Origin: Paragordius varius | Taxonomy: Eukaryota > Animalia > Nematomorpha | Direction of reading: 5' to 3' | Length of the DNA: 64,000 bases | NCBI GenBank assembly: GCA_964247055.1 | Contig: OZ176050.1 | Coordinates: forward strand, 13,702,001 to 13,766,000 | Part shown: positions 1 through 56,709 of the stretch, one piece after another | How positions within the stretch are numbered: position 1 is the stretch's first letter | How the letters are laid out: every line of letters begins with the position of its first letter | The notes under the pieces: model-generated | What the model was told of the DNA's origin: nothing | What the model saw: the letters and a program-made list of their open reading frames with translations, nothing else | Databases searched by the model: none | Position numbers and translations under genes: made by a program

Positions 1-3000
1 ATGGTTATGTCATGCACTTAAATCCAATACCGTAAATTATTCCACCATACCTAGCGAAATGTTTACCGGTGACAATTTCGGTGAAAATATGTATGTTATA
101 ATATCAAAATTTTTCATATCTTAATTAAATTTGTTTAACTTAATTCAAATGTGTTTAGTAACATATCATTGGAAAGTACCAGAAACAAAAAACAGTTGTG
201 GCTAGTTTTACGGGCAGCTATTGGTCCACAAAACACCCTGACCAACTTTAAAATTATCCATCAAATAAATCAATTAATCCTCAACAGGGAGTTTCAATTT
301 GTCAAATATCGCATGGAAACTGATGTATTAGTTTTTTCTTACTCAAAAATTTAAAATATGTTTTAGATATATGTTAAATGTGAAGCCGGTTGTCAATTAA
401 ATTTAAAGTTACAAATAATTTTTTTATTTTTAATAAGATTAAATTAATTTATGAAAAAAAGTAGGTTAATTTTTGACATTATTTTTAAGTCCATTAATTT
501 AATGATTATTTATAGCGAAAGAGTTCTTTTATAGCTTTATACATTGGAATCTCGGAACCGTTTTAAATGATTTTATTTTTTTTCAAGATATTTAACAAAT
601 ACCTGTTTTTAATTTTATTTTGATTTTTTGGGAAAAAATATAAAAAACTTTTATAATTGGCATATAAAGTGGATACCTTCCTCCCAAAATGTTTACGATT
701 GTGAAAAAATATATGGTACCCGCATCATGACCCATAAAAAATATTTAGAATTCGAATTATTTGATTAAAATTTAATTAGGAAGTCAAATGTATGTTTATA
801 TATATTACCAGGCTATCCACATATTGTTTTAAGTAGATACCAAAATTAGATACCATTTGATAACAACAGAATCAGAACGAAATGTATTTTGGCGTTTGAA
901 AAAACCACTTTTTAAAAAATCTAAAGAAAATTGGTTAGAACTTGAACTAGAAATGCACGCAATTACCATTCCATTTGTTGCTTTTATCCATATTTTTTTT
1001 AGTTAAAAATTACAGCTCTCCCAAATGATACAGTTAAAATCATAGGATTGCAAATAAATTCTACCAATGACCTCTTCGCCACAAAAACATTAAATTTTAA
1101 TTCAACTATAGTTCTTGCAAAACCAAAAGGTATAAAATCTACCACCGGAATGAACAACACTTTCACCCTATTCAATCTTATTTCGGGCGGTTCCGTACAA
1201 TACTCAAAACATAATCTAATAGTTAGATTGTATAAATGTAAACCACATCAATCCATACACTATATTACAAAGAATCTTAAAACGCAACACAACTTGCAAG
1301 AGTTAAAGCAGTTTATTCAGAAAAATAATTTGTAATTACTTATTTTATTCCGTAAACCTAAAAATTATGCTAACAAAACGTAGAGACATAAAGACAAATA
1401 TTTTTATTCAAAAGTCAACCATCCTCTTTTTTAATTTTGTTTTTCATATATACAGTATGAGTAGGTATAGCTAGATATGAAATATTGCCAAATAGTTAAT
1501 ACAACAGAGGCAGTATTATTGGCTTATAAATATTTTTTACACTTTTTATTAATATTAGCCAATAATACTGCCCTTTGTTTTATTAACTATTTGGCAATAA
1601 TTAATAACTTTCTAGCAATGTATCTTACTCATACTGTAAAACCATGAGATATATTAAAAATTTTAAAAAAAGTACAATGGTCTTTCAAAAAAAGTACAAT
1701 GATCTTTATGTTTTTAGGTTTGGTATGTGTGATTTAAACACAATTTTATAACATATAACTTATTTGTAGCACTCAAAATAAAATTGATCCGGAGTTAACC
1801 TATATGAGTACGGATGAAAAAATAATTTCATTTACGATGAATCAATACAATTTTAGTCTGTTAGATAAGGTTTGGCTTCAAACAATGCACAAAGACTCCA
1901 ATTTCCTTACCAAAATTATCAATTCGGTATCTTTTAAATATACTATTTATACCTCAAACTGACCCTTAAATATTTAAAATTTACCCTTGAACATTTCAAA
2001 ATGCGCATTGAAAATATATTATGAGGCTAAATTTACCTATAATCGAGAATTTTTGTTGGCATAATTTATTATTTTTTCTGCAATACAGCTTTTGGTTTTA
2101 TACAAAATTTTACAATATTATAAAACATAGCTATTCAATATTTTATGTAGAAAAATAATATTGAGTAATTTAAAGCAATAAAAAAATGCCTATAATTAAA
2201 TGTAATTTAAATTTTCTAATATTGAGTATTAATATAGAAAAAATTAAAATTATCATAAAAAAGCTATTGCGCCTAATATCAAGTTATTTACTTAAAGACC
2301 CGTATTTAGGTAATTTTACTCAATATGCACGGCCATGTCAGAAACTAAAGTAATCTAATTAAAGGATTTTACATGCTTGAAAAATTTTATTTAAGGTAAG
2401 ATTTCTAAGGATATGTATATTTAAAACGTTTTTACCGCGCCTAAAATTATATTTGCATATTAGTATTCAGAAATTATGCCACCACCTAGCCGAGATTGTT
2501 TTACCCTAATCGAAATGAAGAATAGTGCTGTGGTTAATTGGAAATTATCTTTTAATCCATTGATGCACTTCAATTCACCCGTTTCGTTTGTTGAATTGAA
2601 TAATCAAAAACATGAGAATATAATGCCCTACAATATTGAACTCAGCTTGTACAAGGGTACAACAGTTTTGGGAAAAGATAGTACGGGAAATACGTATTCT
2701 TGGCCTTTAAAGTACTTCTTATCCCAAAGGTATAAAGCACATACGAATCATTGTACCACGCCCAATAAGTTAACAATAGAGATTTGGAGAAAACATGGTA
2801 TTTTTACTGTTTAAATGTTAATTATAAATCTCACTGTTTAATTTTAACCATTAATATACCTTTGAACTATTAAGGTTCACCCTCGACCAATTCAAATTCA
2901 CCCTGTAATAAATTATGTGTATTTTAAGATTAAAAATTAGCTATATTATTTTATATTTTTTAAAAAAAATGAAATTATGTTTACAATTAAAATAAAACTG

Positions 3001-6000
3001 AAAAAATAATAACTTTGCCATAAAAATATATTAGTTTTTAATTGTGAGTTATAATAGCCCGATATAATTTTTTAGGGTGAATTTGAATTGTTTAAGGGTG
3101 AAACTGAATTGGTCGAAGGGGAATTGAATTGTTCAAGGGTGAATTTGAATTGTAAATGGTATATTATAACTTTCAGAATTTTTGAATTCCAAAACACTTT
3201 GCAAATACATTAACCAAAACGTGACACTATATCCCTTTTATATTTCTCACATCGATGGTACCAAAATGCACCAAAATTTAAACCCCAAGTATATATTCAT
3301 TCCAATCTTATTTATAAAATATTCTTACAATTTCTAAATGTTTATATAACAATTTCAGGGCATTTCTTGCTAAAAAACGACATGACTTGTCCTGTCTTAT
3401 GCAATCGATTGCATTGATCGAAGAAAAGTACAATGATAAATTCGTAATACAATTCCCCTGGAAAACAGCGAACCTCGAATTAATCCGTTACCCTAATCAA
3501 GTAAAATCGATTGATTAATGAACTATACGATTTAAAATTATACTCAAAATGTTAAATATTAATTTTATTAAACTTGAAATATTACATAATTTAAAATAGT
3601 TAGTGGTTGAAATCCCAGTTGAATTTTACATTGAAACCATATCCTTCATCCAATCGCCTCTATTCAAGGGTAAAAAAGAGGATTATTATCATTTTGATCG
3701 CCATATTCTGCACGATTCCAATTTGCACAAGGTACCTAAAAGATTTATAGTAAAATTTATTTTTACTTTTAATTAAAAATTTACTTAGTATTGGAGAAAG
3801 TATTTTAAATTTACTATGGTCCTCGAAAATTTCCGGCAAATAAGGAATTGATAAATTACAGGATACTTATAGTACTTTTAATTTTTTATAAGATTTTTTT
3901 CCCATTTAAAATAGCTTATATAATGTTAAATCAGCTATTTTGGAATATTCCATAATAAATATAAAAGAAAATTTTGATTCAAGCTCTGTTTACAAAATAA
4001 TTATGCGCGCATCTAACTTTAATGGAGTTATAATGATAAAAGTTTAAAAATTAACTCGTACGCCCTAAACGCACCATACTAATATAAATATTTTATCTTT
4101 TAAATATATCAATACCTGATTGCTAGATTATATTAATTCAGTACATAAATGGCATTGAAATACTTGAGGTTTATGAATATACTGTAATACGAAAACCCTT
4201 ATCCCAATATTATAAACTTATAAACCAAATAACTGGATATTACAAAAATAAAAGCTATAATTTCAAAAAATTCAAAGCTTATTATATTTTTGGCGAGTGT
4301 AATCAAAGGCATTCAGCGTTAATTCCTGCAAACTACCCAAGCTTAGCATGTATTGAATCGGTCTTTGAAAAAGGTATACAGTAAATTGAAATTATACGGA
4401 CAAAACTTAAAAATATAAAGACAATTTTTTTTCAAAAGACTACCATACTTTTTTTAACCTTAATTTATCCAATAAAAATTATTTAAATACAATCTTAAAT
4501 TACCTAATTGGTTGTGTTACCAATCTACATCTCTATATTATATTTTGTAGTTATACAATGAGTTACATTTGAAAAATTCAGAATCAAAAAGTATGGTTGT
4601 CTTTTAAAAATTTTTTTTGTCTTTGTATACGTTTTATCCGTATAATTACACTATCTATATTTATATATATATATATATATATATTTTAACATTTTATGAC
4701 AGAAATTTATATTGAGAGGCAAAACACTTGTGGACTGATCAAGAAATCTGGGCAATACAATATAATTTATGATAAAGGTCAAAATTTCAAGTATATATTT
4801 ATATATAGTAAAAATTGAAATTATACGAACGAATATATATATAAATATAAGGACAAATATTTTTTCAAAAGACCGCTGTTTTTAATTCATTTCTTCTACA
4901 ATCATTGTTAATTGCAATGTATGAAATAGAGATGTACTCACTGTTTATTTTAAAATTATAATAATTTATATGGGAAAAAATCAGGGCTTGAAACCGGAAC
5001 TGCATGGAACCGAAGCCCGGTTCCTGGGATTTTAACAGGCATTGGGATTAAACCAACGCGGTTTCGGTTCCACTTCTCCGGGAACCACCGCGGTACTGAT
5101 TCAAGATTTCAAGAACCACCTTGGTTCTATCTATAAATTTTTAGGAAGCAACCTGGTTCCGGTTCTACCCCTTTAATTACTGGTTTCTATATGATTTTTA
5201 ATATAAAAATTTTTTATTATTTAAATTTGATTGTACCACTATATATTACCTACTTGGAATTTTAAACTTAAAACTAAGCGCCTAATATTACATTAGCGAT
5301 CGATTATCTCTAAATTTTGGACGATTTAACTGTTCTAAAAAAACTAATAGTTTTAAGTCGAGTTTATTTATAATACATATGTTCGTATTTATGGTCTCGA
5401 TTGAAAGGAGTTTTCTCATCCTTAATTTTCTATTTTCAGACTTGAGCAGTTTGACCAGCCAATTGCTTGGTCCAATAATTTTTTGAAGTTAAAAAGATTT
5501 TTTCGGATGTCATACTTAATTTGATTCTCATTTTATACCTTAATAATACTTATACATTTTCCTTTAAATTTTTATAATTTTTTTCATTTATTATGGTACA
5601 TATTTTTCTTTCGCTATACATTTGGCAATTTATAATAAATTGTTTAATTGTTAATATTTTGGTTGTATTATTATAATAATAATTTTGCAAATCATTCAAT
5701 CAAAAGTTAGGAACCAAAAATGGAACCGGTTCCGTAACCGCTAATTTTTAAGGAACCACGGTTCCGGTTCCAAAATTTCAGGAACTGAGTTCTATTTTTA
5801 AATTCTTAAGAACCAACGCGGTGCCACTTGTTCGGAACCGACCCGGTTCCGATCACTTTTTGTGAACCGGTTCCAACCCTGGAAAAAATATGTCTTTATG
5901 TTCTTTGCATTATATCTTTATTTTTCAATTTTTACTAATATTATTTATAATTATCATTAGAAATTTGCCAATCAGAAGCGAAGCTTTTGGCTTATATCGA

Positions 6001-7468
6001 TATATTGTTATTGATATAACGCTAAAACCAATGAGTTTAGGAGAGTATAATTGGAATATAATTAGCCAAACTTACCAAAATTTGATTAATATAACCTCTA
6101 TGACATTCGATATCCGAGCCGAGGTATGAATTTTCCTATATCTTTATGATATATATTTAGGCATGATAAACGCATTTTCTGACCGTGGCTATAACCGCGT
6201 TTAAAGGAATCAGTTGTAAAAAATTCATTTAATTGTAAAAAATGCGTATATTATATTTTATACCATTTACAATTCAAATTCCCCCTTGAACAATTCAAAT
6301 TCACCCTAAAATAAATTTAATGTTTTTTAAGATTAAAAATTACTTATATTTAATTAATATATTTTCAAAAAATAAAATTTTGTTTTAAATTACAATAATA
6401 CTGAAAAAACAATAAACTATGCCATTAAGATATATTTCATATTAATGAGGACTTACATTAGCCCGAAAACACATAATTTGTTTTTAGGGTGAGATATGTT
6501 CAAGGGTGGATTCGATAAGGGTGAATATAAACTGCAAATGGTATATTAATATTTAAAACGTAAAAAATGATATAAAATTATCGCTATTTTTAAACCAATT
6601 TGATTTTTAATCAATTTTTTAAAAAAAAATTACGAATAAACCTTCGTTTTCAGAATTCAATAATTATTTTTTTACTCAAACCATATAAATATAATTGTTG
6701 TTTATTAATTTACATTAAGGTTACTTTATGGAGGGATTAGCGATGGTATCGAAATAATTGGGTAAAATAAATAAAACAATTTTCAGACATTTTTACTGTG
6801 AACTCTAAACTAGCAAAATAAAACAATTCTAAGGCGATCTATACAATTTAAATTCACTCTTAACCAATTCAAATTCACCCTCGAACTATTCGAATTCACC
6901 CTGAATATTATGTGTTTTTGGACTAATATAACTCATCATTAATATGAAATATATCTTTATGGCATAATTAATTATTTTTTCAGTATTATTTTAATTTTAA
7001 ACAAGATTTCATTTTATGAATATATAAAAAAATATAGGCATCATTCAATCCTGAAAAATACATAATTTATTTTAGGGTGACTTTGAATTGGTCGAGGGTA
7101 AATATGAATTGTTATAGGGTGAATTTGAAATGTTCAAAAGCGAATTTGAGTAAATGGAATATATAATATTAAAATATAAATTAAGGCGGAACAAAACATC
7201 CCAAAACCCAAACAAAGCTTTAAAAAAATGTCGATCGCTTATAATATGTTATTAATTTTTTCCTTCTGCGAAACCCGTTAAAAGCCTCTAATATAAAACT
7301 ACCTTGAAATAATTGTGAAAAACAAATTAAAAGTTTTAAAATAGGCAATTTCAATGGTAATACATAGAAATTTCTATTAAAAAAACTTCAAGAACGGGAT
7401 AATTTAGTAATCTACTATAGAAGACCAATGAATCCTTTAGCTTGTTTTGATTAAAAGTCAATGCACTG

Positions 7469-7499
<31 letters not shown>

Positions 7500-8182
7500 G
7501 TAAAGGGCAAGATGAAAATATATATTTCCTAATTAATATATCATTCGATAGATTATATTTTATTTTTAGGGGTCATTTGCCATATATAATGCGGCAACTT
7601 GCAACATTTCAGTCCTGAAAAAATCTGGTGTTTATTGGCATTTACATTCATTAAAGCTTTCAAATTATAAGGTATACTTTTATAATTACAATGTATTTTT
7701 TTAACATTTTGCAGTTAAGGATGAAATTATACAAACATAAAACACAAAAATAAAAAGACAAATATTTTTTTTAGACAATCATACTTTATTTAACCTTAAT
7801 TATTCCTATATAAATTATTATTAAATTACATGGTAAAATACAATATCGATTATTTTACCAATATACATACCTATTTCATACTTTACAATTAAAAACCATG
7901 AGTTATGGTAATTAAGTTCAAAAAGTAGACGATCGTTAAAAAAACATTTGTCTTTATATTTTTGCGTTTTTTACCTGTATAAATACTATTCTACTTTTAT
8001 ATTTATCCATATTCAAGTTCATAAAACTTCACAATGATTCTCTAATGATAAATGATGATCAATATACCAACACACTTTTGGTGGCTTTAAATTGCAGGAG
8101 GAATGCAGTTGTACCTTCATTAACGCATGCGAATGTTACATACAAATTTTTTGCTCTGATACAAAAATGCAAATTAATCTAG
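1..8182 (+). CDS. Unassigned multi-exon, multi-module protein (member of the window's novel gene family); 5' end lies off the window; 325-836 and 3732-3914 unresolved
   Basis: Phase-compatible GT-AG exons with open frames: <1-90, 159-324, 837-976, 1003-1331, 1770-1926, 2464-2797, 3177-3288, 3359-3500, 3600-3731, (3789-3799 or 3789-3851 with stop), 3915-4041, 4142-4373, 4703-4790, 5961-6123, 7570-7671, 8018-8182 (TAG). Exon 4703-4790 (EIYIERQNTCGLIKKSGQYNII) resembles 52524-52620 (ELYLESKSVCDLVTDIRAKYNII). The last exon ends LIQKCKLI*, like IVRYCQSNVY* and VIRICSSYIP* in the paralogs. This may be two adjacent genes. Confidence 0.62.
535..715 (+). pseudogene. Exon-like segment with two in-frame stop codons
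   Basis: AG at 533-534 and GT at 716-717, phase 0 to 1. It translates LYTLESRNRFK*FYFFSRYLTNTCF*FYFDFLGK...NVYDCEKIY; FYFDFLGK matches FPFKFLGK in paralog exon 20747-20939. Confidence 0.4.
1453..1636. mobile_element. Palindromic MITE (CAGTATGAGTA termini); related copies at ~40990-41185 and 45800-45981
   Basis: Terminal inverted repeats cagtatgagta...tactcatactg, TA flanks, internal inverted ggcagtattattggct/agccaataatactgcc. Confidence 0.75.
2848..3159. mobile_element. MITE family A (CCATTTACAATTCAAATTCACCC termini), representative copy; others at about 6263-6541, 6843-7157, 22674-23001, 30695-30961, 33409-33718, 43313-43611, 44412-44731, 46785-48969 (interrupted), 59355-59627
   Basis: About 280-330 bp. 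Long TIRs built from a degenerate ~21-nt unit (aattcaaattcacccttgaac), shared AT-rich core, usually TA-flanked, no ORF. Confidence 0.9.
4982..5881. mobile_element. Non-autonomous hAT element with GGAACC/GGTTCC subterminal multimers
   Basis: Termini CAGGGCTTGAAACCGG...CCGGTTCCAACCCTG; exact 8-bp TSD GAAAAAAT at 4974-4981 and 5882-5889. Confidence 0.88.
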
Positions 8183-8666: not shown

Positions 8667-8932
8667 TGTAAAGTTGATTTATTCACGTATAGCAATATGG
8701 TATAATAAAATAGAGTTGAGCGATAAAAAGAAAACCAAAATAAAAAAGTGAGTTGCTATTATATCACAAGTTCTTTTTATGTGTGCATGCCTTATTTGCG
8801 TAGACGTTACACAATGGTTATTCTCAACAACAGATAAGCTTTAAAACGAAATATATATATAATATTCAAATACAAAATTACTGATGCAACATGAATTGGT
8901 GTGTTAACAAAATAGAATATTATAACCTTACA
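8667..8932 (-). repeat. 3' LTR (266 bp)
   Basis: Direct repeat of 12902-13168; 6 substitutions and 1 indel by manual comparison. Confidence 0.96.
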
Positions 8933-8945
8933 TTACTCCCCCCCT
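8933..8945 (-). promoter_or_regulatory. Polypurine tract
   Basis: AGGGGGGGAGTAA on the minus strand, abutting the 3' LTR. Confidence 0.9.
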
Positions 8946-8983
8946 AAGTTAACCACGGGGGCTGTCGTGTTCGTACATTATAC

Positions 8984-11900
8984 CTATAAGTTTAAACGAT
9001 CGGGAGGCTGCCGTCTTCTTAGCGGATATCTACGCTCGGGTAGGTCAGAAACCTCCTTTACCACGTCGGGTGTGGCCTCTACAGGCGTCAGCGATTCTGG
9101 GGCTACGTCTTGCCATGAGGTAGCAGGAGTTGGGGCATTTGAGATTCCGAGGTGGGATGGAAGGTTTGTTCGGAGTGGGCTCCCTCGACATGACCCGGGA
9201 CACTTTCGACGCTGGGATATTTATGCTCTATTAAGGGATTAGTTTAGTATGAATTCCCTCCTGACCTACGTCGTAACTGATCTGCATGTTTACGTTTTCG
9301 AATCCCTTCCTCATCTTGCACTTCATACGAGAGTAACCCCCTTCTCTCCAGAATGTGACCTGGCCGCCAGCCTACGGCCATTTCATTTTTAATATAGACA
9401 GGATCGTCTTGTTGGAATTCGCGTCTCGGTTCATTTTCGTGCTCTATAAATTCGACAGGGGTTGTTTTTACCCAAGAGATAGGATTGTGTACACGCCGTT
9501 TTAGGAATATGGCGGAAGGCGTTTCTTTTAGCGAAGAATGCATGCTAGTTCGATACGAATAAAGGACCGTGTTGATAGCTTCATATGTATGCATTTGTTG
9601 GGTCTTAGTAGCGGCGTATTTCGTTTTTAATGTCTTTATTACTCTCTCTACTAGACCGTTTGTTTTGGGGTGATAGGGTGCTGCACAGATGTGCTTTATA
9701 TTCATATGATTTAGGAGAGTCGTAAATTCTCTTGAAGTAAAATACGTGGCGCTATCGGTCACAATTTGGCGGGGAAAGCCAAATCGTGCTGTTTTTCCAG
9801 GCAATTTAAAACGTTTTGACTCGTTATTGATTTAAGAAGATCTATCTCTCACCGTGAGGCGCTATCGATAGTCACTAACCAATAATATCCGTCCACCGGT
9901 CCAGCAACATCTATATGTAACCTTTCCCATGTCAAAGTGTTAAAATTCCATCGATAGGGAAGATTTTCAGGTGCGTTAGGTCGATAGGTTTGGCAAGCCT
10001 CGCACCTTTCCACATAATCCGCTAGATCGGTGTCTAATTCGGGCCAAAATACCGAACACGGGCTTTCATTGTTTTTAGCCCGCTGTGTCCCGCATGCAGA
10101 AGTTTCAATATCGTTTCCTGCATCGCTTGTGGTATCACTAAGCGATCATTCAGGCATAACAGATTATAACAACACTCCAAGTCGTTTTTATGTTTTAAAA
10201 AAGGTTTCAGATCTTCGTCGATCCAACTGTTTGTCCTGAGAGCATTTTTAACTTTTGATAACCGTTGGTCAGTGATCGTTGCCTCTTCGACCACTTTCTT
10301 ATTTACATCCAGCGTTTTTAGAGCCAAAAATCGTACCTGCTTGGTGGCCGCGTCATCTTCATCATCTGGTTGGCTATGCTCTATGGGAAGTCTCGACAAC
10401 GCGTCATCTAAGTTTCCTTCCCCTTTCTTGTAAAATATTTCATACTCGTACCCGATGGTCTTCGATATCCACCTGAGCAGTTTGCTATTATTAATGTTGT
10501 TGATGTCTCTCTTCCGCCCAAATAGTGACACCAGCGGTTTATGATCTGTATATATCTCGAAAGGTCTTCCATATGCAAAGTATTTAAATTTTTCTAGGGC
10601 AAACACTATGGCCTTGGCCTCTTTTTCGATCGTGGAATAACCCTTTTCTGCTATTGAACAAGTTCGTGACGCGTAAAAAATTGGGAGTTTCCCCTGTGGG
10701 GTCTTATGAAACAGTATTGCCCCAAACCCCTTGTTGGAAGCATCTGTTTCGATCAACAAGGGAAAACGGTCGTTAAATGGCATTAAAGCGGGGGGCCTGA
10801 TTAGCAAGCTTTTTGCTTTCGCGAATTCACTATCATCTGCCGGGGTCCACCGCCAAGGTGTATTCTTTCCACTTAACTTGTGTAAGGTTGCTAGGTGTGG
10901 GTGACAGTTTGGTATAAACCGCTCATGAAAATTTATTAAGCCTAAGAACGAACGTAGCTCAGTTTTGTTTGTAGGTGTCGGACAATTTTTAATGGCCTCT
11001 AATTTTTCATTGGACGGCTCAATACCTTGGTCAGAAATCACGTACCCCATGTATTTGACTCGTGAGATACCAATTTGCAATTTGTCACGGCGCAATCGTA
11101 ATCCCGCCTCTTGTAACCTTCTAAATACTTCCCTTAATCTTTAATCATGTTCCTCCCTGGTAGCTCCGGAAATTAAGACATCATCCAGGTACACACAAAT
11201 ACCAGGTATGTCCTTTAAAAGATTGTCCATGCATCTTTGAAAGATCATAGGTGCTGAAGTTAATCCGAATGGAAGTCGTTGGTAAGCATAAAACCCTTTG
11301 TGAGTTGTGATGGTTACTAGCGTCTGTGACGCCCGGTCTATCGGAAATTGTAAGTAAGCATCTTTCAGGTCTAAAGTGGAAAAATTATCCCATTTGCCAC
11401 TTTGGTGGCCAACCCGTCAAAATTAGGTATCAGATGAGAATCCTTTGCTAAATAACGGTTGATACTAATTCGGAAATCGGCACATATCCTAATTTCTCCA
11501 TTTCCTTCAACTATATTTACTGTGGAAGAGGCCCATGTTATTGGGGTTTGGGTCGGATCGATAGGTCGGAGTATTTTGAGTTTAACTAATCTATCAATTT
11601 CATTTTCTACTAAAGGTTTTAGAGTTAAAGGTACTCTACGACAAGGAAAAACTTTAGGTTTGGCCCCGGGGTCGATAAATAATTTTATTGGGGGCCCCTT
11701 GAAAGTACCTAACTCGTCTGAAAACAATTTGTCAAAATAATCAAATAACATTTTATTATTAGGTGCTTGCGTATGTAAAACTGAAAAAACATTTTTTTGG
11801 GAATTCTAACCGAAACGCCCGCATCCAATTCATGCCGAACACGGCTGGCGGGTTAGTTTGCGTCACCACGCAGGGCAGGCACTTCTCCTCTTCGTTCAAA

Positions 11901-12879
11901 ACCACTGAAATCATCGATTTTCCGAGTACTTCTATCGGGCCATCATTGTAGGTTCGCAAATTTGGAGCTGGGAGCAAACGAGGTCGACCAATATTTACCC
12001 AAGTGCGCTTGCCAATAACGGATACCTCGGCGCCTGTATCGTAGATAAACGTTGTTGGTATATTATTTATTAATACCTGAATCCGGGGGGTGTTGTTCGG
12101 GCTAGTCATGGTGCGGATTGACGGCCGTCGGAACGTTGCCTTGCATACTGTGCTGAAATGATTCCATTTGTCGCAATTGAAACACCGTTTTCCTTTTGCC
12201 GGACAGGTGGCGGAACCATGTCGATACCCACAATTACTACATAGCTTTCGGGTTATTTGATTGATTGTATTATTATCATTAACAACTGGTTGGATACTTG
12301 AAGGAAGTTCACTGGTATTATTATTGTTCATATCATTATTATCTCTGATGTTGTGAACCTTTTTATCTTCTAATTCATAGGAATAAGCGATGTCTACAAT
12401 CGCTTAAAGGGTTACCGGACTCCCGTTCTTTTGCCATCTGGATATTTGGATTGAATTTCGCGTTCTACTCTGGGATTTTCAAGACCTACCAGGAATAAAT
12501 CGCGTAATTTTGACTGAATATCCCCTTCAAATTTCCCGGCTTCACAGTTTGCTTTCATTCATCTGGCATTTTTTTTTAATCGGTAGAATTCAACTTGATT
12601 TAACCATAGGCTGCTGATTGGTGAATATATCTGAGTGGCCAAGGTTGCAATTTCCTCCCATTCCATGTCATCTATGAGTTTTGGGTATGCTAACGTTTCG
12701 ATTTTCATTATTACTTGAATACCGCCGAAAGCGAGAATAGTGCGTTTCATTGTGGTGTCATTGGATTCGATATTTTTGGAATTTAAGACTCTCCTGATGT
12801 GACGTATATATTGCGTAAAATTCATCGGTTCCTTAAAAGGCTCCAAAATCAGTTTTGAAATGTCCAGCGCTTGGCTCAT
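8984..12879 (-). pseudogene. gag-pol remnants with frameshifts and stops
   Basis: Gag start MSQALD; double Zn knuckle CSNCGYRH...CFNCDKWNHFSTVC; protease YDTGAEVSVI; RT RICADFR and YLDDVLISG; RNase H ETDASNKG and YTDHKPL; integrase HAGHSG, VTDSATYF, PYHPKTNGLVER; C-terminal RRYPLRRRQPPDRL in a shifted frame. Confidence 0.93.
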
Positions 12880-42200: not shown

Positions 42201-45001
42201 AAAGGAAAGTTTGAGGTATGGTCTTAGGCTTAATCCTAACAAAACCAAAATATTATGTACAGGAAAAAAGCCTACAATTATAATAGAAGGAGTAGAAATA
42301 GAAATAGTTAAACAGTTAACGTTTTTGGGCGCAATAATTTCAGAGGATGGGTCTTCAACTCCTGACATCAGAAAGAGAATAGGATTGGGTAGAGAAGCGA
42401 TGACCAAATTAATAAAGATTTGGAAAAACAAAAGCGTAGGAGTTGAAACCAAAAAAAGATTACTCTACTGTTTCGTTCTCCCGGTCACCACATATGGATG
42501 TGAGAGTTGGACCCTCAAAAAAAGGGACAAGGAAAGGCTCATGGCTTTTGAAAGGAGCTGCTGGCGTAGGATGCTAGGATACACCTGGAAGGATAAAATT
42601 AAGAATGAAAGTCTAACTACAGAAATAAAACCTAAAACAAACATCATGGAGATAATTCTAAAAAGAAAGTTAACATATTTTGGTCATGTCATGCGATCGA
42701 ATTCTCTGGAGAAAGATACAATGTTTGGGAAGGTAGAAGGGCAAAGGAAACGAGGCCGACCACCGATGAGGTGGTTGGATATGATAAAAGAAGAGACCAA
42801 AATGACACTGAAAGAGCTCAATATAGCGGTTAAAGATAGAAAAAAATGGAAAGAAATAGTTAAAACTATATCCAAAAAGTCGTTTACGACTTAGGAAAAA
42901 CCAACCAACCAGATACAAGAAGTCTTAACATATATTTTAATTAAATAAAATACTTTAGCTAAGTGTGTTTCTTCTGATATTTGCTTAAAAATTTTAAATA
43001 TCTGATAAACACTAATATATTTGTGGCTGGCTTAAAGTGTCTTATTTATTGCGATTATAAATAAATACCACAATTATTAGTAATTTTTTTATTTATTTTA
43101 TAAAAACGTGGCATAGATGACGACATGCACAATCCAAGTCAACTGCAAATAAACCAAAAATCCTCGAAAATGCTCAAAAGTGCATTTAAATCTTCAGTAT
43201 CTACCACGTCTTATTCATCAACTACCATTTTAAAGTCGTCCACAGATAGTCAGGAATCAGCAAAATCTGCCCACAGGTAATACAAATTAAAATTTTACAG
43301 AAAACATATATACCATTTACAGTTCAAATTTACCCTTGAACAGTTCAATTTCACCCTAAAAAACAATTATGTCTATTCGACTAATATAACTCATCACTAA
43401 TATTAAACATATCTTTATGGCATAGTTTTTTATTTTTTTCAGTATTATTTTAATATTAAGCAAAATTTTAATTTTTAAAAATATATCAATATAGGTAATT
43501 TATAATTTTAAAAAATACATAATTTATTTAAGGTTGAATTGTTCAAAGGTGAATTTATGTTCTTCAAATGTGATTTTGAATTGTTCAAGGGTAAATTTGA
43601 ATTGTAAATTGTATAAAAAACTTGTATTTTTGTCAAAATGTATCTTCTAATTTTTGATTGAATTTATATGGGAAAAATTAAAAAAAGGTATGTTGTACAT
43701 ATGTTTTTACCTTTTGTCCAAATAACATTAATTTTTATTACAATAAAAATTAAAATTATACGGACAAAATCTAAAAATATAAAGACATTTTTTTTCAAAA
43801 GACAATCAATGACATATTTTACGATTATTAGATGCTTTTAATAGGATAAATTAAGCTTTAAAAAAGTATGGTTGTCTTTTAAAAAATTGTCTTTTGGATT
43901 ATTGCGTTTTGTCAGAATATATTAATCTTTATTATGTTTAAATTAGACGAGCAAATCGAGTGTTTTCCTATTTATGTTAAAATATATGGGTTGAATATAA
44001 ATAAATTTTTTCATTATATAATTTACAGGCGCAAACAGCAACCCCCGTTTCAAAATCAAAAAATATCGTTCGACCTATCAACTACGAATGACACCTCAAG
44101 CATTGCCGATAGTTTAAACAATCCACCCGACAAACATAAAATGGATAATCCAACCACATCTAAAACATTTAAAAAAGGTTTGTGTTCGATAAAAATATTG
44201 GATCCTTTTAGACATCATTTCTATATTTTACCGTTTTTATAGCGTATATTAATACTCTTTTAAATATATAGAAAATAATGTTGAAACCAAAAAACGAACA
44301 CTGAGTCGACGCGACATTCTCATCAAAAAAGTGTCAAAAAATGTTTCTTTCATTGCGAATCACATTCGGGAGGAAGACGAAGGGGCTATGGTAATTTTAC
44401 TATAATATATATCATTTACAATTCAAATTCACCCTTGAACAATTCAAATGCACCCTAAAAATAAATTAAGTGTTTTCGGGCTAGTATAACTTAACATTGA
44501 TATGAAATAAATGTTTACTACAAAGTTTATTATTTTTTCAGCAGTATATTAATTTTGAACAGAGTTTTATATTTAAAAAATATTAACAAAATAAAGTTAA
44601 TTTTTTAATTTTAAAAAACACATTATTTATTTTAGGATGAATTTCAATTGTTTGAGGGTAAATTTGAGGATGAATAAGAATTGTTTAAAGGTGAATTTGA
44701 ATTGTGTGAGGGTGAATTTGAATGTAAATGGTATATGTTTTCAAACTGTCCGTAAAATTATTTTTATTGTCACCATTACATGGTATCAGGTCACTTTAAT
44801 ATGCTAAACACATTTTTTATATTACAGAAAAGGGAAGATTGGAAGTATATAGCCATAGTGATAGATCGCATTCTCCTTTACATTTTTGTGTTTGTAAGTT
44901 TAGCCGGAACATTAGGAATCATTATTAGTGCACCGCACATCTTCGAAAAGGTTGATCAGCAAGCACGAATCGAATACTTGACTGGAAAACAGTCAGAATA
45001 A
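32108..45001 (+). CDS. nAChRbeta1: Nicotinic acetylcholine receptor non-alpha subunit, insect beta1/ARD-like (also resembles nematode UNC-29/LEV-1); signal-peptide exon not located
   Basis: Exons 32108-32238 (SEDEERLVKDLF), 32890-32934, 36580-36689 (WTPDIVLFN), 37116-37406 (Cys loop CIMDVRYFPFDEQHC, KFGSWTF), 37690-38627 (M1-M3, EKITLGISILL), 39855-40295, 43117-43276, 44029-44177, 44272-44390 (VSFIANHIREED), 44828-45001 (EDWKYIAIVIDR, M4, APHIFE). One frame throughout, ~850 aa, no vicinal Cys in loop C. Orthology is inferred from recognised motifs only. Confidence 0.93.
34603..34794 (-). mobile_element. tRNA-derived SINE with target-site duplication
   Basis: tRNA-like head with A/B boxes on the minus strand; flanking direct repeat taaacattaatttttatt at 34581 and 34796. 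Confidence 0.8.
35854..36329. mobile_element. piggyBac-like MITE; related copies at 40384-40944, 61158-61679 and ~62380-62915
   Basis: TTAA on both sides of three copies, C(A/C)C...GTG termini, asymmetric internal inverted repeats (gattcaaattggggtatcta). Confidence 0.75.
37433..37624 (-). mobile_element. tRNA(Lys)-like SINE in nAChR intron 37407-37689
   Basis: Head GGCGTGATGGTATAATAGG...GACTCTTAC...GTTCGAACCCCG (A box, Lys-CTT-like loop, B box); body shared with the 34603 copy. Confidence 0.82.
39463..39732. mobile_element. Small hAT-like MITE
   Basis: CAGTGGTTCTCAA...TTACTG termini; flanks gttcaacc/gtttaaac (6 of 8 match). Confidence 0.55.
41196..41485. mobile_element. Small hAT MITE
   Basis: CAGGGCTGCCCAA...TGGGACACCCCTG termini; tattagat on both sides (one extra T on the right). 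Confidence 0.7.
42161..42911 (+). mobile_element. 5'-truncated RTE-clade LINE in nAChR intron
   Basis: Uninterrupted 227-codon ORF 42211-42894 (GLRLNPNKTK, TYGCESWTL, YFGHVMR, GRPPMRW) followed by an (AACC)n tail. Confidence 0.92.
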
Positions 45002-46801: not shown

Positions 46802-48713
46802 CAGTGGTACTCACCAAAAAAAATTTGAGGGGCCAAATAAAATATATTTTTTTTCGAGGGCCATGAACTTATAATGGCATATATTCCATAGCTATTTGAC
46901 ACATATGCACATATTTATACCCTAAATCAGCACAAAGAATTTTTTGCGTAACGCATGTGAATCCAGCTAAAATTCGGATTGCACCATTTAAATTAAATTA
47001 AAATATTGATAACAACATTTATTTTGATATTAATCAATAATTTTTGACGAATTTGGTTTTGCCTCATGACAGGCCAATCATAGGTCGTCTATGATTATTG
47101 GTTAAGCGATTTTTGAATGTAGTCTACATACTTCATTTTTGAATATGCCGTCTCACACGTGTAAGAGGGGAAATCAGTTAGGATAATTTGAGCACATTTT
47201 TTATATTTTCATATTTATTTGGCACATTGCCCTACGATCTTTGAATATAGCCCCAAATTGGAATTTTTAAAATTTCAATGATATAGGCCTGATCAAAACC
47301 GAAATTATCAATGCTTAATATTGGATGCCATGTATTTTCAACGTGTTTTAAGCAATTTATGATATTCTTAATTCTTGAAATCTGAATTTCATCCCAATTG
47401 ATATAAATATTAAATGATTGTCTATTATTGAAATAATCATTGCGGTAAATTCCATATTTTCTTCATAAATCGTTTTAAGTGTTGGAAAATATAGGAGTGG
47501 TTTAATTATAATATCTTGTTTATATATTATTAATTTTTCTTCAAAAGCAAATATATGATTGGCGAATTGGGTTACTATTTTGTTCCTGGAAGACTTGGAT
47601 TAAAATTACTAAGATTAGAAGTAATGTCGCAAAGGTAGGCTAATAAAACCCACCATTTGTCACTATTAATTTCCTCGTCAAACTTTCTGTTATCTTATAT
47701 AAATAATATAATTTCATGTCTTAAAACAAAAAATATATTTAATACTTTGCTAAAACTTAGCCATCTCATAGCGGTGTACAAAAGAAGATCATCAAACTCA
47801 CTGTGGATATCTTTCATAAGGTTTTTGAAATTACGGCGGTTAAATTCCACGGATTCACTATATTTAAATTAGCGCAACCATTTATTAGACATTCTCTTAT
47901 TAGTTGGAAATCAGTAAACGTTTAATATTTTTTTCCTAAAATAGAGCGAATTTCATACGAAGCTAATGTTATATCTTTTTCCTAGAAAGCTATGGACATA
48001 ATAGATTTTTTTTGGTATAATTCCTTAATCTTTATATGTTTCATGATTTTCTGGCTATTTATGAAAATGATGTATTGTAAATCTTTCAATTTTGTATTTT
48101 TTTATAATTATGTTGTCCTTACATATAAGGCAGATAACAACATTTTTATTTTAAACGACAAAGAATTTTTCTTCCCATTCTTTTTCAAAAGAGCGATTTT
48201 CATCGGATAATTTACGTTTTTAGCATTAGATGTCATCCTTTAAATTTAAGTTTAAATATTAACTATTTTTCAAAAAATAGGAATATAATTTGAATAATGC
48301 TATAAAAAACAGATCGAAATATGATGTTAATTTGAAAAATATTTTATGGGAATGAGTTTGAAAAATTATGCAGGATAGCAATGAAAAAAATATATAAATG
48401 CAAGTTTGGGTGAAAGGCATGCTTAAATACAAAAAAGGATTGCAATAAAAATTTCAAATTATAAAAGAAAATAGAATATCGAAACATAAACAACGTGCGC
48501 CAAAATTTTGAAATCATTTTAATGTAGGGAAATTTTATTTTAAATGGGTTAAAAATAAAAATACCGAAATTAAATCTAAGGAAAATGAATTAAATTAAGC
48601 GAAAATTCGGTTATGTGTATTTTAGAAATTCATCATAAAAAAATAATATAAATATCAATATGAACATAGGGCAGTTTCAAAGCACTCCTAGGGCCGCGGT
48701 TTGAGTGCCACTG
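46802..48713 (-). mobile_element. hAT (Buster/SPIN-like) element, second copy without the LTR insertion, nested in a family A MITE
   Basis: Same TIRs as 8492-15209; exact 8-bp TSD GTTTAAAC at 46794-46801 and 48714-48721; colinear with copy 1 apart from an internal deletion. Confidence 0.92.
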
Positions 48714-49245: not shown

Positions 49246-52200
49246 TTTTGTGTAATTACACCCGTACTATAAAACCCGAAGATATCCTAAGGTAATATAG
49301 ATATATAAATATATATATAGATACATTTTTTGCCTAAATATAAAGCGATAAAAATATGCATCTAAATTAAAATGCGAAAATAATAGACCTTCTGGAGGCT
49401 TAGATTCAAACCTACGTATATTAACGGAGAATGGATATTTAATGTGGATCATCGATGCTAATTTTGTTCCCTATGACAATTCCACCCGCAATCTTGATTT
49501 GGTTGTTAAAAGCGACGCTTTATCCCTAAAAGAATATTTCATACATCAATACAATCCAGAGGTAAATTGATTACATTACTGTAGACATCATCTCATTATT
49601 ATAGAAAAACCACTTTTTGTAACAGTTGTATATTTATATTTTACCTAAAAATTTAAAATTAATTGAAATTATGCGGACAAAATTTAAAAATATAAAGACA
49701 AATGTTTTTTTCTAAAAGACAACCATACTTGTTTAAACTATTTAAAAAGGTAGCTCATTGTTTAAAATTGCAAATTATAAAATTGTATGTTGGTTACACA
49801 ATCAGTTATACATTTTACGTAATAATATATCTATTGAACAAAAATTAAGGTTTATAAAAGTATATAGTTGTCTTATAGAACAAAATTGTCTTTATATTTT
49901 AACCTTTGTCCGTTCAATTTAAGTTTTTACTGTAATATTAATTGAAGTTTTAAATTATTACAAGCTGCTTAGAAGTTGGGAAAATAGGTGCTTATTACTA
50001 AAAAAATATTTACTAAACTATGTAAAAATGGAAAATAAATAATAAATATTAATTTTTCTAAAGACCCTTATAAAGGCTCGGTATATAAGGGGCCGTCTAT
50101 TATTTAAATATACATATATATATATATATATATATACTAGCGTAAATTTCGTGCTGCTACGCAGCCCGAGGAAGTCCTTCGGACTTCTGGGGGGGTTTCG
50201 AAGTTTGGATTTGAATGGGTCTACCGGTTTTCCGGTACCAGATCACAAAGTTACATGAGGAATCGGTTTTTAACGGGTAGCACCTTACCCAGCAGCTATC
50301 ATCAAAGAAACGACTGACTAAAATTTTTGCCTTTTAACAGGGAATACGTGGAATCCATATTGAATTTTTACGGTCTCCTACCTAGGGCGAAAAATAGATT
50401 TAAAAAATTATTTTTGTGGACTTTGTTTTTTGAAAAAAATGGCATTTTACGGGAGGAGCGGGTAAAAAGAGGGCCTAAATCAAAAAAGTGACTCGAGTAT
50501 GTTCGGCGCAATCGAAAATGAGTAAACAAAAATCATATTTGAAATAGAATGGACCAACACGTTCTCCAGAAAATTGTCTCAAAGACACGATTTTTGTGGA
50601 CTTCTGTTTTCAAAAAAAACCGTTTTTCACACGGGGTGGGCCCGAACTGGGGGCCTATTTCAAAAAAAGGGCGAAGTTATTGTCGGGGCATTCATTAATG
50701 ATTATATTTTTTCGAAGTTTGGATTTGAATGGGTCTATCGGTTTTCCTGTACCAGATCACAAAGCCAGCATTTTCCATTTTTATAAATATATAGATATCC
50801 ATCGTTTAAAACTTGTTGCAATCATACTAATAAACTATGATAAAGATATAGTTTTAATAACAATTTTTATAGTATCCCAAAATTTTTATAGTTATTAACC
50901 AAATTAGGAACAATATAATAAGATATACAAGTCATGAGTTAGGTTATTGAAACCGATATAATTACTGGGTTAATTGGTAAGAAAATTTTTTCAGATATTT
51001 TAAAGGTTTTTTATATTCTTTAGATTTTATATAATCTACAATTTAATTTTTTAGTTTATCATAGAAATATATCCAGCCATACAAAAATTATATATGTTGT
51101 GTGGAACAAATACCAATTCTGTCGTAGACCCATTTATGAATCATGAAAATTCAACATGTGTTTTAATCAAATCCAGATATCATGTTCTCGTCGAAGATCC
51201 CATCAGAGTTTAAATTAAAAATATATTATAAAGACAAATCTTTTTTTTTCAAAAGACCGCTGTACTTTTTTAAAGATTATTTTTCTCTATAAAACTCATT
51301 GTTTTAACTTGTAAAATATGAAACAGAGATTAATTTAACAAGCTATTATATATTTTACAATGGTAATTAATTGATTTAGAAAGCAAAAAATAAGGTTTAA
51401 TAACGTATGGTTGGTTGTCTTTGAAATTTTTTTTATGTTTTTTACGTTTTGTCTAAATAATTTCAATTAAAATTAAAAATAAATCCTTGGATGTGAAATT
51501 TTGTAAGAAATAATTTTAAATTCCTCGCTCAGAATTTTTGGATAACACAAATATTAAAATCCATTTTTTGAAGTTTAATACATAAAATCGTTCAGCTTTA
51601 TAAAGGTAAACACAGATGTATATAAAAGTTAACCTAAGCTCGATCGCATTCTTACACAACTTATTTTATTGTTTTAGGAACACTGTAGGAAAAATATATT
51701 ATTATGATAGTAGCAACTGAAAATATTTCACAATTAAAATAGAATTTTAAAGAAACCGTTTTCCAGTAAAGAAAACATCTTTTTAACCACACGCAACATT
51801 TTTTCGATCATACGGAACTTTTTAAGCACACTCAACATTTTTCAAACACAACTTTTTTTCAAGCAAAGACAATTAAAAGTCGTTTGGTTGAAAAAATGTT
51901 GCTTTTGACTGAAAAATGGTATAATATTTATAAAAAACCAAAATTAATTTAAATTACATATCTATTATTTATTGTATTGTTATTATCACAAGTTAAGAAT
52001 CAGTCAATACCACGGTAAGATGTTTTGCATGTATGAAATATATTCGAAATTTGCCATAAAATCAAAACCTTGGATATTTCCCTTCAGGTATATAACTAGA
52101 GTTGTGGTCCAAGATGTGAATCCCTTCATAACTCAACTCCCTAACATCAAAGCTAAATTATTTGATTGCGTTAGAATGTATCAAAGTATACCATATTTCA

Positions 52201-55200
52201 TAAGTAGTTTAAATTTTTTGATGTTATTACTGTTTTTATATATATATATATCCACAGGATATCAAGTGCCTACAAAAATGCGCTATAAACTGTTTTATGA
52301 AGACATGAGTAAGTTTTTGTAAAACAAAATAAATCTTATTTCCATTTTATATTTTATATTAAATATTAACAGATCAGCTGTTATAGAAATGAAGAGATTT
52401 TTTGAAAGGGATTATTTAATAAACAATGACTTTGGTTAAGGCTTTTAAAGGAAAATTACATCAACTTAAATTTAAAAGATATTTTGATATCAATCCAATT
52501 TTTTTTAAACTATTTTTATGTAGAATTGTATTTAGAATCAAAATCGGTGTGTGATCTTGTAACTGACATCCGTGCAAAATATAACATAATCGATTATTTT
52601 GCTAACGTATCCTATATTGAGTAATTTTTTTTAAATTATTTGGGTTGGTCTAAAACAGGGCATCTTAAACTATGGGTCGCGACCCCATTGGGTCGCGAGT
52701 GATAAAAATACGATTTAACAAAAAATGTTTTTTAACTTGTAAAATTATTGTTATAAAGTAAAATCATCGTAAAATATATCATAAAATCTTCTGCGGAATC
52801 AAATCATTATAATCTATATTTTTATAAAAATGGAAAATGCTGGCCTTGTGATCTGTTTCCAGAAAACCGGTAAACCCATTCAAATCCAAATGTCAAAAAA
52901 ATATATTCATTAATGAATGCCCCGATAATAGCTTCGCCATTTTTTGAATTAGGCTCCCAGTTCGGGCCCACCCCGTGAAACGTGTTTTTTTTGAAAACAG
53001 AAGTCCAAAAAAATCGTGTCTTTGAGACAATTTTCCGGAAAACGTGTTGGACCATTTGCAAATGTGATTATTTTTACTTTTTTTCGATTGCGCCTAACCT
53101 AGCCGGCTTACTTATTTAATTTAGGCTCTCATTTTACCCGTTCCCCCCGTAAAACGCCATTTTTTTAAAAAAAACTAAATAATTTTTTGCCCATGAGATG
53201 AGACCTTTAAAATTCACTGAGGATTCGAGTTATTCTCTGTTAAAAAACAAAAATCTTAGTCTTGCGTTTTTTAATATTGGCTGCTGGGTAAACAGATAGC
53301 CGCTAAAACTGCGCCACTATATACAAATTGCGTTGTTTTGGAGCTAATTTACAGAAAATTTATGAAGCCATATGGGATCATTAAAATCTGGAAATATTAC
53401 CGGTAACTTGGTAAAAATTAAGGTCCGGTTTTTTTATTAGCCGTTTATTTGGGGCCTTTATGCCCTCAAATGCCATCATATAACGATTATTTAGTATTGA
53501 GGTATTTTTTCGAATAACCCATGAGACGGTGGTATCAAAAATGATTCCAAATATTTGCCCTTTAACTCAGCGCTTTTTCCATATAGGTCTATGGGTAGGG
53601 GTCTATCGGTTTAAAACTGACACGCCATACAAAATAGGCGTAGTTTTGGAGCTCAAAAAACTTAAGAAGCCATACGAGTTCAGTTAAATACATTTCTGAG
53701 GAATTTGTATAATATCATTCTTTCCAAAAAGGGACCACAAATAATTTATCCCTTGATCCCAGCTGTATGAACACAATTTCGAATTAAAACTTTTGACCAT
53801 GATTTCGTAAAACAAAAATCTTAAAATAAATCCAATGATAGCTGAAGATTAACTTTAACAAGGGACAGATTAAATATGGTCAATTTAGAGTAAACAATAT
53901 TTCAGCCTATGCAAAAACCCGTAAAAGAATAATTAAAGACAATCTTTTAATTAAATATGTTTATTATGATTTTTTTTCCATTAACTCTATTTATTGCAAA
54001 TTATTAAAAATAATTATCTGTGAGACTACTTCACAGCGAAGCGTGACAGGGCCAGCTAGCATCTTGTATAAATTTGCTATGAATCAGAAAATGTTATTCT
54101 CCTGATAAATATTATCAACAAAATTTCTAAGAGTTATTTCGAAGAAACTATTATTTTTCTATTATATTTGTTGGGGTCGTTGAGAAACTCGCAATCATAA
54201 ATGGGGTCGGGAACTAAAAAAGTTTAAGAAGCCCTGGTATACACATAATTAAAATAAAACTTATATTAATATATAAAAAAATTTAATATGTTTCAATAAA
54301 ATCTTTATGGATCATGAGTTACGTGAAAAACTTTGTAAAAAGTCATTATGGATCGACTAAGTTATTAATCAAGTAGGGTATTATTTTTAACTATATATAT
54401 ACTTATTTAAATGGAATATATATAAAATATACCACAAAATTTTGATCATACATATTATTACAGTCATGTATCCTTTATTTTATCAAAAATTTATTTTCTT
54501 TCGTTAAATGGGTATAATTGTTAAAGAATGGAAAAAAACAAGGGCTCTATGGTATTAACAATATCATATTTATCAAAAAATTATAAGAATTACCATATAG
54601 CTCTTTTTTCCTTTCTGTACCAAATATTTAAACCCATTTGACAAAAAAAAATTTTTGTATAAAGGATACATGACTGTATATATAATGTGAGTCATATGAT
54701 ATATTTATATGTTCTTCATGATATTTATAAAAATAATTTTTACTAAGGGAAACTTATAAAGTTTATATTATGGTATTAGAATTGTATAAAATATATCCAT
54801 TGTAATTTTTTATTTTGAATTTCGTAGAAATATAACTTTAGTACGCCCTACCGATAATAATCTACGTATTTATGCAGTATTGAATGCCAAGATTACACAT
54901 GTAGAAACACCGACACAATATAAGCTAACTGTTTTTCCCTCTTTAATAAATGTAACACAAATTTTTGGCTATGCACCTCTTTTCATAACGGAATTTGAAC
55001 AGGTTGATAAATATTTCACAATTATTGATAAATAATTCAATAACCGATAAATTAAATTATGCGTCCCAAATGGCCACAAATGTGTATTTGCTCAATAGAG
55101 TATTTTTATAACTTAGACCGAATCGGTTGCAATTTGCCATGCATCTTTTTGAAAATTAAAAAAGTTATGTAGCCATCTAATAAATTTGTACAATATTCTG

Positions 55201-56709
55201 ACAAAGGCGTAGTTTGAGGGGGGAAAGGGGGCTGATGCACCGGATGCCATAGGTGAAGGGGCGCCGGATTTCAAAAAAAAATTAATTTTATTATAATATG
55301 CTTATAAAAAAATCACGCAGGTATGAGGGTCATGACCACGGTTTAAATTCGATTATTTTTTCTAAAACGCAAGGGGGCGCCAGAACTGCAAGCTACGTAA
55401 TATTCTTCTGTGCAAAGTCCAAAGTAAAAAATTAGTAAGAGATGGTTTTACGGCTGACAGTGGCAATAAAAAATTACCTGTTATGGTGCTAAGAAAAAAA
55501 TATAGGAGTGTTTTTATTAAAATATATTGCTATTCCCAATCTTTCTAGTTTGCGTGAATAATAAATCACTATACAGTAAAAAATTGAAATTACAGTATGC
55601 AGTTTAATGGTTGCTTATTTCACGCCATAGTTGGGCGATTCGCAACACAGGAGTGTATGGAATAATAAGGGAAATAATTGTTTTTTCAACATTCTGTTGT
55701 TTTTCCAATACAATACTGTCTTGAAAATTTCACTATCGTGTGAAATAAGAACCATTAAAATGCATACTGAATATAAAGTAAAAAAAATAATGCTAATATT
55801 TTTTCAAAAGACCGCTACGCTAACTGTTTTTAACTCATTTTTTCATTGTTTCCAAAAGTGTTTATAGTGATATATGTATATTAGTAACAAATTCAATCAT
55901 GCATTTTACAAGTTTAATTAAATAATTTATATGGTTACAAAAGTATGGTTGTCTTTTGAAAAAATTTGTCATTATATTTCTAAGTTTTTCTGTATATGTC
56001 AATTTTAACCGTAATATTAGTTTGAAATTCATCAATTGGCAAAGCACAGGGCCCACTGTGGAATCCATATAGAATATCTGGCATCTGGTCGCAAAATAAG
56101 ATTACCGATTTTAGCAGATGAAAAGGTTTAGTTAATGTAACTATTTACAATAGTTTTGTTTTATATTGTTGACCTATACACTTTTTCAAATAAAAAAATG
56201 GATTTTATGATACTTCAAATCATAATGATCCTATCAATATCAAAAAACATAAAACTAATATAAAATATACTTTTTAATTTAATATGAATCAATCAAATAG
56301 TCCACAACTAATGAAGGCCTTTAAGATTTTAAATTTTTATGATGCTGGAATACAGTGTTAACCATAACTTTAAAATCTGTGTTTATGGGTTTTGTTGCTA
56401 ATAAATATGGAGTGAAAATAAATTTCGCAAAAAAATTAAGCTTTGGTTTAATAAATATAAAATTTAATCATTGTTTTAATAAAAATATAAATTTAGTTGA
56501 AATTGATACAAACCCACACGGCTGTAATCATAAACGTACAAAGTTACACTGAACAAAACTATACTTTTACGTATCAGGACGCTTTCATTGAACACATTGA
56601 ATGTACAAAATTTCAGGGCTCAAAAAGGCCCGAATTTTTATTTGTCCCGCCCCAACCTCGAATGCATTTAAAAAGAGTCATTAGAATATGCTCATCATAT
56701 ATACCATGA
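49246..56709 (+). CDS. Unassigned two-module protein (paralog of 17027-22270); first exon not found
   Basis: Exons 49246-49291, 49387-49561, 51055-51207, 51993-52185, 52258-52308, 52378-52434, 52524-52620, 54828-55002, 56021-56125, 56497-56709 (TGA). GT-AG throughout, one frame. Motifs shared with the paralog: LCN..ILRPSG, QYNPE, LCGTN, LRISQY, IFG(F/Y)APL, LKR(I/V)(V/I)R.C. Confidence 0.87.
50137..50795 (-). mobile_element. Non-autonomous Helitron
   Basis: Minus strand: A|TCTATAT 5' end at 50795, hairpin GCTGC-GTA-GCAGC, then CTAG|T at 50137; inserted between A and T with no TSD. Confidence 0.8.
52656..54236. mobile_element. hAT MITE interrupted by a Helitron
   Basis: CAGGGCATCTTAAACT...AGTTTAAGAAGCCCTG termini; degraded flanks gtctaaaa/gtatacac. 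Confidence 0.7.
52813..54059 (+). mobile_element. Non-autonomous Helitron sharing its 5' ~500 bp with 50137-50795
   Basis: A|TCTATAT 5' end; 3' end CACAGCGAAGCGTGACAGGGCCAGCTAG (hairpin plus CTAG). The base after CTAG is C rather than the canonical T. Confidence 0.78.

Follow-up and report, generated by a model that had tools for sequence, protein, structure and literature searches.

Mosaic extracellular proteins are assembled from phase 1-1 exon modules (the exon-shuffling rule), and the LAMP-type lysosomal membrane glycoproteins have two tandem domains of ~160-200 amino acids (aa), with four cysteines each and dense N-glycosylation sites. Here we describe a family of genes from the horsehair worm Paragordius varius that recalls both systems in part, starting from a 64,000-nucleotide (nt) stretch of its 110.6-Mb assembly (GCA_964247055.1, contig 1, OZ176050.1, positions 13,702,001-13,766,000 of the forward strand), which as a whole is called the window below. 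An initial annotation of the window had pointed out three loci around a nicotinic acetylcholine receptor (nAChR) gene as encoding related proteins, and the following labels are used for them:

1-8182, + strand: locus A, which continues past the window's left edge
17027-22270, - strand: gene B, plus a possible first exon near 24.2 kb
49246-56709, + strand: gene C

The explanation that we favour, with some reservation, is that the three loci belong to an orphan family of at least six members, encoding secreted glycoproteins that are built from a repeated four-exon unit.

Comparison of the B and C loci by tblastx gave 12 collinear high-scoring segment pairs with a summed E-value of 4e-51. By reading the DNA around every such pair, and placing borders where both genes show AG and GT in matching phase, we obtained models of nine exons each, named E1b and then E2 to E9:

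22222-22270, - strand: gene B E1b (49 nt, phase 1 to 2, with an 'LCN' motif), followed by a micro-intron of 28 nt (22194-22221)
22019-22193, - strand: gene B E2 (175 nt)
21327-21485, - strand: gene B E3 (159 nt, two conserved Cys)
20747-20939, - strand: gene B E4 (193 nt)
20306-20356, - strand: gene B E5 (51-nt linker, phase 1 to 1), followed by a micro-intron of 22 nt (20284-20305)
20187-20283, - strand: gene B E6 (97 nt)
17798-17972, - strand: gene B E7 (175 nt)
17322-17426, - strand: gene B E8 (105 nt)
17027-17245, - strand: gene B E9, with the stop codon
49246-49291, + strand: gene C E1b (46 nt)
49387-49561, + strand: gene C E2 (175 nt)
51055-51207, + strand: gene C E3 (153 nt)
51993-52185, + strand: gene C E4 (193 nt)
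52258-52308, + strand: gene C E5 (51 nt)
52524-52620, + strand: gene C E6 (97 nt)
54828-55002, + strand: gene C E7 (175 nt)
56021-56125, + strand: gene C E8 (105 nt)
56497-56709, + strand: gene C E9, with the stop codon

All 18 exons have AG/GT borders (GT-AG introns), all intron phases agree, and six exon lengths are equal in the two genes (E2 175, E4 193, E5 51, E6 97, E7 175 and E8 105 nt). The rebuilt models thus give the same count of common lengths as the initial annotation, which had also reported shared phases and stop-free exons and had counted 15 of 33 identical residues in the E6 pair (20283-20187 against 52524-52620); we find 15 of 32, over 97 nt in both. Spliced, the two models contain no internal stop, and blastp aligns them over 408 aa at 40% identity (E 2e-101); per-exon identities range from 0.28 (E9) to 0.60. 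Nei-Gojobori counts gave proportions of synonymous and nonsynonymous differences of 0.79 (pS, saturated) and 0.40 (pN), and the identities at codon positions 1, 2 and 3 were 0.55, 0.65 and 0.37. Since synonymous sites are saturated at such a distance, a numerical dN/dS for this pair is meaningless; the saturation itself, together with the best conservation at position 2, nevertheless argues that B and C are old duplicates retaining coding constraint, and with the intact frames supports the purifying selection that had been proposed for them.

The introns of these two genes show some further features. Short introns (22-32 nt) are, with the ~26% G+C of the window and the invertebrate type of its nAChR, among the traits that show the DNA not to be human, and there are many of them. 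The E4-E5 intron of gene C (52186-52257, + strand) is 72 nt long, in frame and stop-free, so that E4, intron and E5 form a 124-aa open frame and retention of the intron would add 24 residues without breaking the protein. In gene B, the start of E3 and the intron sequence before it recur as a partial tandem duplicate within the intron upstream of that exon (21560-21800 against 21310-21555, - strand), where the E3 copy (21751-21662) meets a stop after 'VQDE' and is a pseudo-exon.

A genome-wide hunt for the extra copies that the initial annotation had suggested looking for, by exon-wise searches and local profile scans, yielded three more complete genes outside the window: gene D (contig 1, 11.90 Mb) and a head-to-head pair on contig 5 (10.68-10.70 Mb; 10,681,001-10,701,000), whose genes lie ~5 kb apart. 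Their exon order and phases are those of B and C. Exon lengths that come back are 97 nt for E6 (B, C, D and one gene of contig 5), 105 nt for E8 (four genes) and 159 nt for E3 (three genes). In the contig 5 pair, one gene combines an E5-E6 fusion with a 32-nt intron, and the other has an intron of 27 nt. Weak, isolated E4-like exons also occur at contig 2 8.75 Mb, contig 8 5.08 Mb and contig 6 0.99 Mb, with no gene assembled around them. Taking locus A into account, the family as modelled is one of at least six members. Pairwise identities lie between 18 and 41%, with distant pairs at only 18-26%. Five of the six members nevertheless share seven Cys that never vary: E3 and E9 contribute two each, and E6, E8 and the end of E4 one each. 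B, C and one gene of contig 5 have an eighth, which belongs to the 'LCN' motif of E1b. Apart from the E3 pair, whose two Cys are 18-20 residues apart, the alignment contains no closely spaced Cys.

The exon phases reveal a regularity within each gene. In B, C, D and the contig 5 genes, E1b-E4 and E6-E9 share the phase series 1-2, 2-0, 0-0 and then 0-1 or stop; in B and C, moreover, E2 and E7 are both 175 nt, and the two blocks are joined by E5, a 51-nt phase 1-1 exon encoding a 17-aa linker. The unit would accordingly be a four-exon block of about 200 aa, present twice in B, C and the three genes elsewhere. As the unit is bounded by phase 1 and its number differs between paralogs (see locus A below), it could be duplicated without breaking the frame.

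Locus A had been annotated as a third related gene, open at its left edge. In raw tblastx and in six-frame hidden Markov model (HMM) scans with B, C and D profiles it did no better than its opposite strand or control regions, an exon-wise genome search found no paralogs of its exons, and its collinear chain score was mildly raised (17.1, against at most 11 in 16 controls). When the family phase order is followed, however, canonical exons corresponding to E2, E3, a fused E4+E5, E6, E7, E8 and E9 can be placed, and further exons extend upstream:

1-90, + strand: first-exon-type piece of an upstream unit (97 nt, from 6 nt before the window; tentative)
159-324, + strand: E2-type exon of the upstream unit (phase 2 to 0; tentative, borders uncertain)
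1003-1237, + strand: E4-type exon (phase 0 to 1)
1559-1619, + strand: unit-opening exon (phase 1 to 2, one Cys)
1770-1926, + strand: E2-type exon (phase 2 to 0)
2464-2797, + strand: fused E3+E4-type exon (phase 0 to 1)
3177-3288, + strand: unit-opening exon (phase 1 to 2)
3359-3500, + strand: E2-type exon
3600-3731, + strand: E3-type exon, lacking the two family Cys
4127-4373, + strand: fused E4+E5 exon (247 nt, against 193+51 nt in B and C)
4703-4790, + strand: E6-type exon (88 nt, phase 1 to 2), the best single profile match
5961-6123, + strand: E7-type exon (163 nt, phase 2 to 0)
7570-7671, + strand: E8-type exon (102 nt)
8018-8182, + strand: E9-type last exon with two Cys and the stop codon (8180-8182)

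The last seven of these (3359-8182) have AG/GT borders and phases of 2-0, 0-0, 0-1, 1-2, 2-0, 0-0 and 0-stop, matching the family. Against the five-member profile, exon 4703-4790, with the phases of E6, scored 12.4 bits (control strand 6.7), and exon 5961-6123, with those of E7, has the family's 'N-L' start. The spliced 345-aa model scored 16.7 bits against the five-member family HMM (E 1.4e-7 for one sequence), a value reached by none of 300 shuffles (maximum 8.8), and hhalign aligned it with the family over 320 columns at 70.6% probability (E 3.9e-5). It is 17-19% identical to the family and keeps the Cys of E4, E6 and E8 and both of E9, while both E3 Cys are missing. Significance thus came only from the spliced model and not from raw comparison, and on that model locus A is related to the family of B and C, though very distantly.

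Further upstream in locus A the four-phase cycle recurs (1559-1619, 1770-1926 and 2464-2797), preceded by 1003-1237 and followed by 3177-3288, with which the next unit begins; taken together, the exons between 1003 and 8182, twelve in number, encode 645 aa without a stop. The gene does run off the window on the left, its 97-nt exon beginning 6 nt before the first position, and some 3.6-3.8 kb before the window start (+ strand) an open frame contains an exon-like stretch 68% identical to exon 1559-1619, an indication that locus A has recently duplicated one of its units in that upstream part. By these exon assignments locus A is longer than B and C, having at least three to four units to their two. 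The earlier suggestion of relatedness therefore stands in the form of a distant kinship, while locus A is not a simple third paralog.

What could be predicted about the proteins points outside the cell. The six models contain 50 N-x-S/T sites where about 22 are expected from composition-matched shuffles; the excess is found in all six and amounts to 3.4-3.7 standard deviations in three (B 10 vs 3.7±1.7, C 7 vs 2.3±1.4, one contig 5 gene 11 vs 4.0±1.9). No membrane segment was seen in any of the six, the top 19-residue Kyte-Doolittle mean being 1.09-1.51, and the proteins end 2-5 residues past the last Cys. Signal-like first exons, defined as an ATG, a hydrophobic core and a phase-1 donor within 3.5 kb upstream, were found for four of five genes, whereas 224 kb of control DNA contained 0.31 of them per 3.5 kb (P roughly 0.02); gene D has none in that interval. 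All are predictions, of which that of gene B is the most convincing and that of gene C weak:

24171-24228, - strand: candidate first exon of gene B (Met and hydrophobic stretch, phase-1 donor; predicted)
47992-48076, + strand: candidate first exon of gene C (weak, predicted)

The invariant Cys, the sequon excess, the lack of membrane segments and the signal-like exons together favour secretion, and the family products are probably secreted, N-glycosylated, disulfide-bonded soluble proteins. The initial annotation had imagined a secreted beta-rich protein; an extracellular fate is plausible on these grounds, but the beta-rich part found no support, the hydrophobic periodicity (period 2 vs 3.6) being neutral at 0.39-0.53 and AlphaFold giving no confident fold for the longest contiguous family exon (window 2464-2796; predicted local distance difference test, pLDDT, 39.6).

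For relatives outside this genome we searched with single exons of 55-70 aa as queries. No match to Pfam-A at the gathering score was obtained with 30 exon pieces from A, B, C, D and one contig 5 gene, as the initial annotation had anticipated in recognising no Pfam family; the best matches (E 0.018-0.18) fell 9-14 bits or more below the gathering score and were all to different, unrelated families. An E4 profile run against 1.84 billion representative proteins returned only two matches, the translation of a satellite-like repeat and an RCC1-repeat protein sharing a 'TQIPNIKAK' motif, both of which we regard as spurious; as the profile did not retrieve itself either, the proteins of this genome are evidently absent from that library. 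The E4 and E7 alignments drew a blank in word-index searches, five exon profiles gave only noise in the PDB, and the best ESM Atlas score for E4, 0.80, is at chance level. At the sensitivity of such exon-level searches the family is an orphan.

Three described families were considered by name. The Cys-loop receptor ligand-binding domain and AChBP, brought to mind by the neighbouring nAChR gene, were rejected, no exon matching PF02931 and the E3 Cys pair being 18-20 residues apart, not Cys-x13-Cys. The LAMP family was rejected for want of a C-terminal membrane helix (hydropathy maximum 1.51) and of a Pfam Lamp match, and for proteins that end just past the last Cys. For the lipid-binding proteins of the BPI/LBP/CETP type, which have two similar barrel lobes (PF01273/PF02886), there was no exon-level Pfam match.

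The gene order in the window is locus A, a long terminal repeat (LTR) retrotransposon remnant, gene B, the nAChR subunit gene and gene C, the two other elements being:

8900-12900, - strand: broken LTR-retrotransposon, between locus A and gene B
about 32.1-45.0 kb, + strand: nAChR subunit gene, spread over ~13 kb

The remnant has separate open reading frames for gag-like, zinc-knuckle/protease, reverse-transcriptase, RNase H and integrase parts, and occupies a G+C-richer island (0.38-0.42 vs 0.26 around). An intron of the nAChR gene contains a LINE-type reverse-transcriptase fragment (42211-42894). Among outside matches of this gene, the best come from beta1-like subunits of insects (~55% identity over the membrane part), and its 294-aa exon matches invertebrate receptors only, at 41-59% identity over that part. 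No close relative was among the matches of that exon in public protein collections, which thus seem to be without an annotated close relative of this species. That the family genes adjoin the nAChR gene is most likely coincidental. Two repeats also recur in the introns: an interspersed element, 60-90% alike in translation, in gene C (52800-53200), gene D and one contig 5 gene, and a shorter element resembling a miniature inverted-repeat transposable element in A, B and C, which accounts for spurious tblastx matches between the loci.

According to the explanation that we favour, the products would enter the secretory pathway and be N-glycosylated, would be held by about two disulfides per unit, and would work extracellularly as soluble proteins of a binding or matrix type. 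The family would have grown by gene duplication combined with duplication of the phase-1-bounded unit, followed by fast divergence in which cysteines, sugar sites and reading frames were kept. Several observations weigh against this picture. Unit 1 and unit 2 are not significantly similar (hhalign E 0.34 with two sequences and 0.062 with five; probability <1%), so the internal duplication is based on matching phases, the common 175-nt exon and the variable unit number of locus A, and not on sequence similarity. The locus A borders were sought with the family phases in mind, which favours agreement, and some of them, like the 5' exons and signal peptides, are models only. Hydrophobic open frames are common at 26% G+C, and some of the signal-like exons may be due to chance. 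Finally, single-exon queries find only relatives about as close as B and C are to each other (gene D scores only 27 bits against the E4 of gene C), and a known fold or family may be hidden from them.

This last point opens the way to a less probable but serious alternative, in which the genes are very divergent members of a described extracellular family or fold, for instance a known beta-sandwich or one of the two-lobed lipid-binding kind, below the sensitivity of the exon queries. With paralogs in one genome already at 18-26% identity, similarity across phyla would be invisible, and blank searches with pieces of ~60 aa are compatible with a known fold; the low AlphaFold confidence, too, comes from the only exon modelled. 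On the other hand, none of the 30 pieces from five genes had a Pfam match below E 0.018, no family recurred among the matches, and the five profiles were blank in the PDB. One could also speculate, in the opposite direction, that the ~200-aa four-cysteine unit is a new extracellular fold limited to the lineage of this animal, multiplied by duplication of its four exons as a phase-1-bounded cassette and built into secreted glycoproteins that evolve fast and may serve in the cuticle or in the contact between parasite and host; we put this forward tentatively and would sooner doubt it than believe it, and the family may be lineage-specific insofar as short exon queries stayed blank in collections with no visible close relative. 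That the proteins are intracellular or otherwise not secreted, with the Cys and N-x-S/T sites as by-products of composition and chance, strikes us as improbable: all 5' ends are predicted, gene D has no signal-like exon upstream, and Asn, Ser and Thr are common in an AT-rich genome, but the sequons exceed composition-matched shuffles in every model, seven Cys stay invariant despite 18-26% identity, and signal-like exons are enriched upstream. Even less credible is a reading of the loci as decaying pseudogenes or chance open frames. The models do come from genomic sequence alone, and the gene B intron holds a truncated copy of part of E3; yet five genes have nine stop-free exons each and locus A twelve or more, every border is canonical with conserved phases, codon conservation follows the order of position 2, 1 and 3, and synonymous sites are saturated, so that this reading is already contradicted by the present data.

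For a poorly annotated genome, in which many genes lie beyond the reach of homology, the set of at least six gene models with a defined unit gives annotators a family profile, and the models are concrete candidates for studies of the secretome, the cuticle or host interaction. Should whole-protein comparison find a known fold, the family would represent an ordinary divergent expansion; were the fold new, it would count as an extracellular domain specific to its lineage, and would illustrate in detail how a family grows when a multi-exon, phase-1-bounded cassette is duplicated.

Compared with the systems mentioned at the outset, the predicted proteins resemble LAMP in having two tandem blocks, four Cys each and dense N-glycosylation sites, and differ from it in their Cys spacing, in the lack of a transmembrane segment and of a cytoplasmic sorting tail, and in the missing Pfam Lamp match. 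From the phase 1-1 mosaics they differ in that the unit, at about 200 aa, is itself split by three conserved introns, and in that its copies inside a single protein show no significant sequence similarity to each other; nor does it match EGF, Ig, FN3, CUB, LDLa or another described module. What the family has in common with these mosaics is a unit that is bounded by phase-1 introns and varies in copy number, from two to at least three to four.

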